DNA of 63,480 nucleotides, counting the filler, from Pelomyxa schiedti (taxonomy: Eukaryota; Protista; Evosea): the NCBI GenBank assembly GCA_020536535.1. It is 10 parts of 10 records of this genome, joined end to end, with 100 filler letters (N's around TTAATTAATTAA, not from the genome) between each part and the next. Parts side by side here need not be neighbours in the genome. Positions count along the whole stretch, not along the records: positions 1 to 1,860 come from JAHLWZ010002236.1; 9 more parts are not named here. One strand, given 5' to 3'. Under the pieces are notes generated by a model. That model saw only the letters and a program-made list of their open reading frames with translations. It was not told the origin of the DNA and did not search any database. Numbering within the stretch: the stretch's first letter is position 1; every line of letters begins with the position of its first letter. This document shows, one piece after another, positions 1 through 6,282 of the stretch. Both the position numbers and the translations under genes were made by a program.

Positions 1-1069
1 CGATTTGTATACGGGTTTTGGGTTTGGTATAAGATAGTTCCATCCGAATTAGGCTGCTGCAGGGGGTAGTCCGCTCCCAGAAGTGCAATATTGCTGTTTA
101 CAACGTTGTATTGTGTAGGACTTTGCGGCATATCAACTGAGAGGACTGCCCACTGCGCAGCAGCGACGTCAGAGTCAATCACATGCATAGTTGGGCGGTC
201 GCCAAGTAAAACCACAGCTCGACTGGAACCCATGATACCTGGAAAAAAAAGGAGAGAATTAAACTTTTTTTGTGTGAAGAAAAAGGGAAATCAAACCTAG
301 AACCCAGGGGGGTGAAATCATGTAGGAGTCATCCATTGTGTTTATGTAGTCGCTGTACAAGGTACCGCCGTAACTTCTAAGCTTACAATTTTGTACAGTT
401 ACTATGCTCCCAGAATCCACAAACACCGCCGATTTTGCCACGCCCCACATATACACGCTTGTATCAGTAATAGATAGCTTTGTTCCGCCAAACACAGCAA
501 TCCCCGCTCCAAGCCCGCTGAAGTCGCACGTATCACTTCCATCAGCGAGAGTGAAATCCTCCACTGCTGCGTCAGTGAGGGTGTAGGAAGCCCCGGAATT
601 CAATATGATCGAATTGAACCCGCTGAATTCCGAGTATAGGTCAACTGTGGTACCCCGCTTCACACAGTCAAACACAGACTTTGTCTTCACACAGCCGGTG
701 GAGTCGAAGTAATAGCCCGGTCGATAGGCGTAGTCGTCCCTTGTGCCGGACTGGACGAGTTTCTGGAGGGATCCAATGGCTCCCAGCGCCCCGGTTGTGA
801 CGCTGCTCAATTTACCGGAAACGCAGGCGCTGCCGTCGGTCGAGCTTATGGGAACGCCGTCGCATAGGTACGTGGTGTATGACGTTGGGGGCGTGTACAG
901 CGTGGAATTCGTTCTGTCGGCAACACTGATCCCAGTGGGGTGTTTCCCTGCCTGCGAAAGTTGGGAAAACTAGAACACAGAAATGGGGGAAAAAGCGAAC
1001 CTGTGTTGCCCACAACAACCAGCAGAGGATGAGAATGAACTGGGAAAGGTGACTTGATGTGTTCGTCAT
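1..1069 (-). CDS. Secreted/surface protein, possibly right-handed beta-helix (pectin-lyase-like) repeats; spliced, 3' end runs off the window
   Basis: ATG at 1069 gives a signal-peptide-like exon (MTNTSSHLSQFILILCWLLWATQ), then a short GT-AG intron and a long exon that includes ORF 259-810 with GAGIAVFGG/YGGTLY-type Gly motifs. The fold is a guess. Confidence 0.55.
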
Positions 1070-1261: not shown

Positions 1262-1270
1262 AAAAAAAAA
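1262..1270 (-). terminator. RNA polymerase III terminator (T9)
   Basis: An A9 run on the + strand (T9 on -) begins 1 nt after the tRNA discriminator base. Confidence 0.8.
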
Positions 1271-1271
1271 G

Positions 1272-1409
1272 TCCGGCAGCTGGGACTTGAACCCAGGACC
1301 TCCAGCTTTGGACTCTAGCGCTCTACCTGAACATCCCGATTCAATCAGTGGCCTCGAAGAGGTGTCGGTTGGATTGGTTGGGGATTGTCGTTCACTGAGC
1401 TACTGCCGG
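1272..1409 (-). tRNA. tRNA-Trp(CCA)-like gene with a 66-nt insertion in the D-loop
   Basis: Minus strand reads CCGGCAG TA GCTC AGT [66 nt, 1393-1328] GGTA GAGC G CTAGA GTCCAAA GCTGG AGGTC CTGGG TTCAAGT CCCAG CTGCCGG A. The 7-bp acceptor stem, 4-bp D-stem, 5-bp T-stem and B-box are perfect, and CCA sits at positions 34-36. Confidence 0.8.
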
Positions 1410-1505
1410 CATTGTTTCGGGCTTCCGCAGCGTTAATTTAACCACCGGTTTTTTTCGGGATGTGAATTGTGGGTCCCAATATTTTTTTGGAACCTTGGGT
1501 TTTTC

Positions 1506-5034: not shown

Positions 5035-6282
5035 TTATTCACCTTGATCTGTCTGGTGTGAAACTCTCACTTCTATCAATTGTGTGCCTGTGATGGCATC
5101 GAGAACAAATGCAGGGGGTGCGGGGCCACGACTTTCCGTTTGTGATTGTGTGGCTCCAGCGCTGGTTGTTGTTGTTGTTGTTTGCTGTGTGGCTCCTGCC
5201 ACCTTTTGCACCACACAAACCTGTTTGGATGACGACGTCAGTCTAAGGTGCTGCACAGGCGAGAATTCATATCGACACAATGGCCGGCCCATGTTGGAGG
5301 CACTGTACACCTCACAGACAGATGAAGTCTGGCCAGGGTCCTCCTGCAATAAAGCAGCAAAGTGCAACCCAGGTGGAATGGCATAAACGTCGTCATACCT
5401 CCCGAAATCGAAGTTTGCCGATTCACCAGTTGTTGTGTTGAAAACAATATGGTCCAAGTCATCTTCATGCACAGTGAGGATGGTGTTTGGGGAGGACCAA
5501 GCCAGGTCCACTGGATTTGAGTGCTGCAGTCGTACACTCTCCTTTCCCATCACAATGACACCATTTCCAGTGCTCCTCACAAGATCAACAAACCAAATGA
5601 ATCCATCCTGCTTCTCGTCACGGCTGTCTCCAACCAGTACCAGTTCATCACTGGAGGGATCAAACGGAGAGAACCCACCCCCATCCACCTTCATAGGCAA
5701 ATCTCCACAAGTGACACCAAGGCCGTGGAATGACAGAGGTTCCCCATCGTCCATCTGCCACACAACCAGCCTGTTACCTTCTGGTTCAACTTTCACTATC
5801 CACTTGCTGTTTGTCACCCAAAACTCCGGGATAGACACCGAGTATTTCCCATCCAGTGTTGCCACAACGTTCTTGTTGCTGTCAGTGATGCACAGAAGCT
5901 CCCATGATAACGACAAGAACCTGTCATCACCCACACATCCTTGAATGTTCAAACTCAATGAGTCATCAAAGTCATAACTCCACCAGGTGCACCACACCAC
6001 ACCCATAACTGCACTCACACCAATGAACACGTGAACAAACTCCAGGTCACAGGTTGGTGCGCCCTGGTCGTCTGTGCGGAGAAAGAGGGTGGCTCCGAAC
6101 TGCTTGCAGCATCCAACGACCCAGTCACGGCCAAACTGCTCACGCAAAACGGGATTATGGCACAACAACCTCGCCGCGCTCCGTGACCCGCACCTGTCAA
6201 TGGATGCACACCCAAACGCAGCAAACAGCGATTCAGCATCCCAATAATACACCTTGAGGTCAACGGGACCCGTGGTGACCAT
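5035..6282 (-). CDS. Orphan family A protein (415 aa, intronless)
   Basis: Shares the motifs RCG..S, VLRE.F...WV, N.KW.V, L.VW, DEL and (V/L)DA.(S/T)G with other ORFs in the window. Confidence 0.75.
   Translation of the reverse strand: MVTTGPVDLKVYYWDAESLFAAFGCASIDRCGSRSAARLLCHNPVLREQFGRDWVVGCCKQFGATLFLRTDDQGAPTCDLEFVHVFIGVSAVMGVVWCTWWSYDFDDSLSLNIQGCVGDDRFLSLSWELLCITDSNKNVVATLDGKYSVSIPEFWVTNSKWIVKVEPEGNRLVVWQMDDGEPLSFHGLGVTCGDLPMKVDGGGFSPFDPSSDELVLVGDSRDEKQDGFIWFVDLVRSTGNGVIVMGKESVRLQHSNPVDLAWSSPNTILTVHEDDLDHIVFNTTTGESANFDFGRYDDVYAIPPGLHFAALLQEDPGQTSSVCEVYSASNMGRPLCRYEFSPVQHLRLTSSSKQVCVVQKVAGATQQTTTTTTSAGATQSQTESRGPAPPAFVLDAITGTQLIEVRVSHQTDQGE

Follow-up and report, generated by a model that had tools for sequence, protein, structure and literature searches.

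A tRNA-like RNA gene with a structured arm in the D-loop, probably unspliced, in Pelomyxa schiedti and a probable giant virus

The anaerobic archamoeba Pelomyxa schiedti carries what is likely a real, selected gene for a non-decoding, tRNA-like Pol III RNA of about 140 nt, which is probably not spliced and has a relative in a probable giant virus; judged by sequence comparison, this RNA appears to found a new family. We lean, less firmly, towards a broader view in which it belongs to an undescribed eukaryotic Pol III family, probably wider in Amoebozoa, whose L-shape and D-loop arm form an adaptor that a giant virus captured with a host snRNA-type promoter. Our literature searches returned no account of this RNA, which is not proof of novelty.

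Gene anatomy

The minus strand of the window (the whole 63,480-nucleotide stretch of DNA that was analysed) carries the entire element, a 138-nt body (1409-1272) followed by a C (1271) and nine T (1270-1262). From upstream to downstream, its features are as follows.

1466-1474, minus strand: DUSE-type upstream promoter element; its core, CCCACAA, begins at 1473, which is 64 nt upstream of C1
1433-1441, minus strand: AT-rich stretch about 30 nt upstream, a possible TATA-like element, loosely kept among paralogues
1410, minus strand: G(-1), candidate transcription start, preceded by a pyrimidine and lying 63 nt past the start of the DUSE; all four Pelomyxa copies have it
1394-1409, minus strand: positions 1-16, the 5' portion of the tRNA-like body, with acceptor strand, U8-A9, D-stem strand and A14-G15; interrupted A-box
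1328-1393, minus strand: 66-nt D-loop arm at 16/18, from the MFE fold; six double-compensatory pairs against the metagenome homologue L098
1347-1371, minus strand: conserved asymmetric internal loop within the arm, a proposed recognition site, with two 7-nt blocks common to L098 in the alignment
1320-1327, minus strand: G18-G19-U20-A21 and the 3' D-stem strand; GG and A21 kept in five of five sequences
1302-1318, minus strand: degenerate anticodon arm of 4 bp with a 9-nt loop, AGxCxAAAR; positions 34-36 are 1311-1309
1272-1296, minus strand: T arm (1296-1280) with B-box, then the 3' acceptor strand and A73, the discriminator (1272); acceptor pairs show compensatory changes among paralogues
1262-1270, minus strand: Pol III terminator, T9, from the sequence

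The two acceptor strands (1409-1403 and 1279-1273) form seven of seven pairs, and the D stem (1400-1397 with 1323-1320) four of four. As a sequence-only reading of this DNA had proposed, the D-loop is interrupted by 66 nt: the insert (1393-1328) separates AGT (1396-1394) from GGTA (1327-1324). All insert helices listed in that reading are reproduced in the MFE fold, in which the arm consists of a 4-bp basal helix, a 4-nt 5' bulge ending in A, a stem of about 14 steps, an asymmetric loop and an apical hairpin. The asymmetric loop has a 5' strand ending in CGACA (1371-1363), closing CC/GG pairs and a 3' strand, CCACU (1351-1347).

The same reading described a complete cloverleaf with an intact B-box and a T9 terminator. 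The B-box and the T run are indeed intact, and the acceptor stem, D stem and T arm are perfect. The cloverleaf nevertheless departs from the canonical form in its anticodon arm, which has G32, an A31.G39 mismatch and no more than 4 bp. Folding energy is no better than that of shuffled sequences (z = -1.05 for the whole RNA and 0.03 for the insert); support beyond chance is provided by paralogues, a homologue and covariation. The expectation that standard tRNA scanners could miss the gene was borne out: ARAGORN run without introns did not call it, and in an Rfam scan the 3' part alone scored, at 24 bits, under the cut-off. ORF pieces flank the element on the minus strand of the window (259-810 and 1506-1820), with the RNA gene between them; they have no Pfam match.

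Copies, a distant homologue and conservation of the fold

DNA and model searches of the published P. schiedti assembly (PMC8887013; 52,367,397 bases in 5,337 contigs) recovered four intact, dispersed copies: the window copy on contig C2236 and others at C19:4631, C372:11667 and C202:4028. There are also incomplete copies, one deleted at its 5' end (C19:9201-9323) and one cut by a contig edge. Positions 34-36 read CCA in two intact copies, the window copy among them, and CUA in the other two; these subfamilies differ by two double compensatory changes in acceptor pairs. The duplicated unit extends from about -65 to the terminator, and paralogue identity falls from 86-96% in the body to 48-81% in the spacer and 37-49% in the flanks, a background level typical of unrelated sequence. 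By sequence, the copy pattern fits dispersal at the DNA level with selection on the body, and not retroposition. For both CUA paralogues, structure prediction prefers alternative pairings where the D and basal helices would form. The sequence-only reading had named a single decayed copy or a MITE as grounds for refutation; both are excluded, since the intact copies are several, each with its own promoter, and a homologue exists in a distant lineage.

Ordinary tRNA-Trp(CCA) genes, for which that reading had suggested a search, are present in the genome, as is tRNA-Tyr with a normal 37/38 intron. Because ordinary genes for both exist, the element is not needed to supply tRNA-Trp or tRNA-Tyr. Among other tRNA genes, G34 occurs in a tRNA-Arg(GCG) (L008:1282-1356) and a tRNA-Val(GAC) (L024:2257-2328), which is unusual for a eukaryote, and A34 tRNAs for Ile, Thr, Pro, Ser and Leu stand beside them. 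The T loops of P. schiedti tRNA-Val genes are atypical.

The homologue came from a metagenome search with a generic pattern of DUSE, A-box, long gap and B-box that included no letters of the insert. This pattern returned 57 metagenome loci, nearly all of them tandem tRNAs or tRNAs with anticodon-arm introns. Locus L098 (Ga0214473_10029703, 5316-5465) has the architecture of the Pelomyxa element, with a D-loop insert of similar length and a T run; its anticodon arm has four pairs and the 9-nt loop AGxCxAAAR, with CAA at positions 34-36 and A33. When a model built from the Pelomyxa copies only was run against the 57 loci, L098 was the sole full-length significant match (27 bits). Its stems differ in sequence with pairing kept, and it matches the Pelomyxa copies in stem length, in the basal helix of 4 bp and in the 4-nt bulge that ends in A. 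In pattern scans of viral contigs and prokaryote genomes, every match was an ordinary tRNA, a tandem tRNA or a chance hit, and no further member emerged. At metagenome loci L090/L124, L095 and L083, the anticodon arm of a tRNA-like gene holds a long structured insert, and a T run follows some of these genes; the inserts are probably introns.

Covariation was assessed among the four Pelomyxa copies and L098, aligned so as to fit the structure. Every one of the 37 proposed pairs is formed in each of the five sequences, and 15 involve double compensatory change; none of 500 shuffles matches this result. The compensatory changes come mostly from one comparison, because only two independent lineages are represented. 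Six of the 15 lie in the arm, the part whose covariation the sequence-only reading had proposed to check. The loop CGACA-CC/GG-CCACU is nearly invariant, with two colinear exact 7-nt blocks (p = 0.003, dinucleotide shuffles); the plain local-alignment score between the Pelomyxa and L098 inserts is not significant (p 0.15). Core tRNA nucleotides (U8, A14, A21, G15-C48, G18G19, U54-A58, U55 and C56) are kept in every one of the five sequences, and so are G32 and a purine-purine 31.39 mismatch. Compared with a decoding tRNA (RF00005), the family thus has the acceptor, D and T stems and the core tertiary nucleotides and lacks the 5-bp anticodon stem, the 7-nt loop, Y32/U33 and a fixed anticodon. 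With its 4 bp and 9-nt loop, the anticodon arm is unlikely to decode.

The contig that carries L098 has 68% GC and is gene-dense, apparently intronless and composed mostly of ORFans. Contigs overlapping it encode HMG and BTB genes and an ankyrin-like protein, whose look-alikes are found in Chlorophyta and Nucleocytoviricota; no giant-virus marker gene was seen on the L098-source contigs. From this gene content, the contig probably belongs to a giant virus; the same origin is proposed for contigs ERZ27256953 and SRR9005073. In a second strain of the source, the RNA is identical at 150 of 150 positions, the DUSE lies at -66 and the spacer is 64% identical; the perfect RNA identity is weak evidence, because neighbouring ORFs are themselves 97-99% identical. 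The RNA is absent from the examined contig DNA of more distant relatives of the source (L226-L228), and a protein-based viral scan gave no relative. L098 and L226-L232 represent an uncharacterised lineage, probably of giant viruses, for which the databases searched yielded almost no protein relatives and the viral contig collection none.

The upstream promoter

The sequence-only account did not include the upstream promoter. CCCACAA lies at -64 in all four intact copies and is present in every copy with intact upstream DNA. The related motif CCCA[CT]AA is found at -58 to -65 in 12 of 12 sampled U2/U6 genes, and tRNA-Sec has its DUSE at -64, as the element does. Among 66 upstream regions of ordinary tRNAs, none has CCCACAA at that place and one has a looser DUSE match. 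In Dictyostelium, an upstream sequence element about 63 nt before snRNA and Class I genes is linked to their expression (PMC3188802, PMC7919456). By its sequence, the CCCACAA element is the Dictyostelium DUSE, and the gene has the layout of a DUSE/snRNA-type Pol III gene, with the DUSE about 63 nt upstream and a T-run terminator. Transcription would start at G1410, to judge from spacing that matches U6 and tRNA-Sec starts, and the transcript would be essentially leaderless. Pattern searches found no other gene that combines a DUSE, an A-box and a B-box.

In Pelomyxa, the DUSE is conserved upstream of U2, U6, tRNA-Sec and a U1-like gene (C455:34208-34312, minus strand). Matches to U2 number at least 33 and those to U6 at least 21, scattered over many P. 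schiedti contigs; the tRNA-Sec gene (C1146:9231-9316, DUSE at -64) is of the eukaryote type. Two DUSE-led sequences, C359:18017-18116 and C413:31895-31994 (both minus strand), have an snRNA-like upstream layout and a common start, and another at C516:5106-5184 (plus strand) also has an snRNA-like upstream layout; all are possible non-coding RNA genes. That the Dictyostelium DUSE reaches Archamoebae offers a simple route to non-coding RNA genes in these organisms.

Alternative readings, proposed function and known systems

The sequence-only reading left a choice between a non-canonical tRNA intron and a tRNA-derived Pol III RNA with an extra domain. The latter stands, given the dispersed copies, their own promoter and the conserved arm; the former fares poorly, with no strict BHB and a variable anticodon. 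As an intron, the insert would be cut out by the tRNA splicing endonuclease to leave a suppressor-like tRNA (CCA/CUA), and the upstream promoter would compensate for the broken A-box. We consider this quite improbable, and give it what weight it has because Cyanidioschyzon merolae has D-loop introns of up to 69 nt, a length like that of our insert, in genes that also depend on upstream promoters and in which BHBs can be relaxed or absent (PMC3728597). The insert borders do fall within the canonical D-loop in five of five sequences, and the base of the arm sets a conserved 4-bp helix beside a 4-nt bulge ending in A. However, the geometry is only BHB-like, as had been noted from the sequence: a strict BHB (4-bp helix, 3-nt bulges) is found at the borders in none of the five sequences, one-sided forms are not conserved, and cuts at the bulges would miss the insert borders. 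The spliced product would have no stable anticodon (CCA, CUA or CAA, with G32, the 31.39 mismatch and, in L098, A33), and normal tRNA-Trp and tRNA-Tyr genes are present. The mid-insert loop is among the best-conserved parts, which would be unexpected in an intron so far from its borders.

It is very improbable that the element is a functionless tRNA-derived repeat or pseudogene of the SINE or MITE kind, with L098 a chance convergence. One copy does lack its 5' part (C19:9201-9323), and the folding energy is unexceptional. Against this, the copy number is only 5-6, no tail is seen, the flanks are unrelated, and the duplicated unit takes in the upstream promoter, an element that would be lost on retroposition; the high copy number, tail and promoter loss of tRNA-derived SINEs and MITEs are thus all missing. 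Acceptor pairs have changed in a compensatory way within the P. schiedti genome, and L098 agrees with the Pelomyxa copies in its loop motif, its bulge geometry and its unusual anticodon arm. Several other identities were rejected: tRNA-Sec has a separate gene; inspection showed no conserved C/D or H/ACA boxes of a snoRNA; complementarity to U2 and U6 reaches at most 6 nt, which argues against an antisense RNA; and the CUA paralogues and L098 do not keep the border AG that a spliceosomal GT-AG intron would have.

We favour a tRNA-mimic adaptor RNA. Pol III would transcribe the gene from the upstream DUSE and the internal B-box, starting at or beside the mature 5' end as in tRNA-Sec. Positions 16-17 of a tRNA point away from its core. 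Because the arm replaces these looped-out positions and the core tertiary nucleotides remain, the elbow would be intact, and the body would fold into the tRNA L-shape with the arm projecting from it without splicing. Such an RNA could act as a two-ended adaptor, its tRNA-shaped end docking on a tRNA-recognising machine (the ribosome or a tRNA-handling enzyme) and the invariant loop of its arm binding a specific partner, for which the TROVE domain of TEP1 and the SRP are candidates. The probable giant virus, with its own copy under a host-type promoter, presumably uses or titrates the partner of the arm.

Two specific versions of the adaptor reading name that partner. An amoebozoan vault RNA, bound by TEP1 and with its tRNA ancestry still visible, is a tentative possibility. 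TEP1 is the only TROVE gene found in P. schiedti, where three MVP genes are also present, and vault RNA genes have hybrid promoters of upstream elements and A/B-boxes and RNAs of 80-190 nt (PMC10498592, PMC9326685); the element likewise joins a hybrid promoter to a genome with TEP1 and MVP, and is the only DUSE, A-box and B-box gene found there. Its loop contains YCGA, which is similar to the core of the GGUCCGA/GNCGAA motif bound by Ro60 (PMC4201824), but the overlap is only 4 nt and internal instead of near the 5' end. There is no match to RF00006, a model that may not reach protists, and the terminal helix is an unbulged, perfect 7-bp acceptor stem, whereas that of vault RNAs is bulged (PMC9326685). 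The TEP1 gene has the full architecture (C807:25500-35400), the MVP genes lie on C352, C810 and C516, and Ro60 was not found in P. schiedti, in which the single TROVE locus is TEP1. An SRP accessory RNA, which like trypanosome sRNA-85/76 would replace SRP9/14 in elongation arrest, seems unlikely. In trypanosomes, sRNA-85 is tRNA-like and uses positions 15-30, in its D-arm region, to pair with 7SL (PMC2800229). Searches of P. schiedti recovered SRP19 and six SRP RNA genes and neither SRP9 nor SRP14; however, such short, divergent proteins can be missed in an intron-rich genome, and controls did not validate their absence. An indirect pattern search of a single SRP locus (C455) for the complement of either loop strand after a DUSE found none. 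The six SRP RNA genes lie at C455:141187-141416, C817:109562-109789 and C714:10755-10994 on the minus strand and at C794:5993-6229, C834:74640-74883 and C850:57586-57798 on the plus strand. SRP19 is present in two copies on C408, and with SRP9/14 undetected the Alu-binding proteins may have been lost.

Should the RNA be bound by TEP1, tRNA and vault/Y RNAs would have a living link in it, and the proposed tRNA origin of the latter would become testable; should it serve the SRP, SRP9/14 would have been replaced by RNA a second time, independently. Since tRNA scanners and Rfam miss this RNA, a whole family may hide in amoebozoan and giant-virus genomes. In a giant virus, an RNA gene of this kind driven by a host snRNA-type promoter would correspond to VA RNAs and EBERs and would imply access to host Pol III.

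Several known systems resemble the element in part. Ectopic D-loop introns of C. merolae and archaea (PMC3728597) resemble it in the D-loop insert of about 66 nt, the broken A-box and the upstream promoter; unlike them, it has no BHB at the borders, a degenerate and variable anticodon arm, a conserved insert interior and ordinary isoacceptors in the same genome. Trypanosomatid sRNA-85 and sRNA-76 (PMC2800229) are also non-decoding tRNA-like RNAs in a genome where SRP9/14 were not found, but they are 76-85 nt long and have no inserted arm; for our element, pairing with SRP RNA is conjectural. Vault RNAs (RF00006; trypanosome TBsRNA-10) are alike in size, Pol III terminator, hybrid promoter, small paralogue family and the presence of TEP1 and MVP in the genome; they differ in that the element retains a full cloverleaf, has no bulged terminal helix and does not match RF00006.

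Dictyostelium Class I RNAs and tRNA-Sec (PMC7919456, PMC3188802) have a DUSE about 63 nt upstream and end in a T run, and in the Class I RNAs, too, a conserved unpaired motif sits within a stem maintained by compensatory change; Class I RNAs, however, are about 50-60 nt long and have no cloverleaf, and the true tRNA-Sec is a separate gene. In bacterial YrlA (PMC4201824), a tRNA-like domain is joined to a long arm with a short conserved motif, in an RNA that follows an adaptor logic and has viral carriers too, namely phages. YrlA has a circularly permuted structure and a gene next to Ro60, whereas the Pelomyxa RNA is unpermuted, has its arm in the D-loop and is found with TEP1 only. We propose that the element works like a tRNA-mimic adaptor and stands outside every known family.
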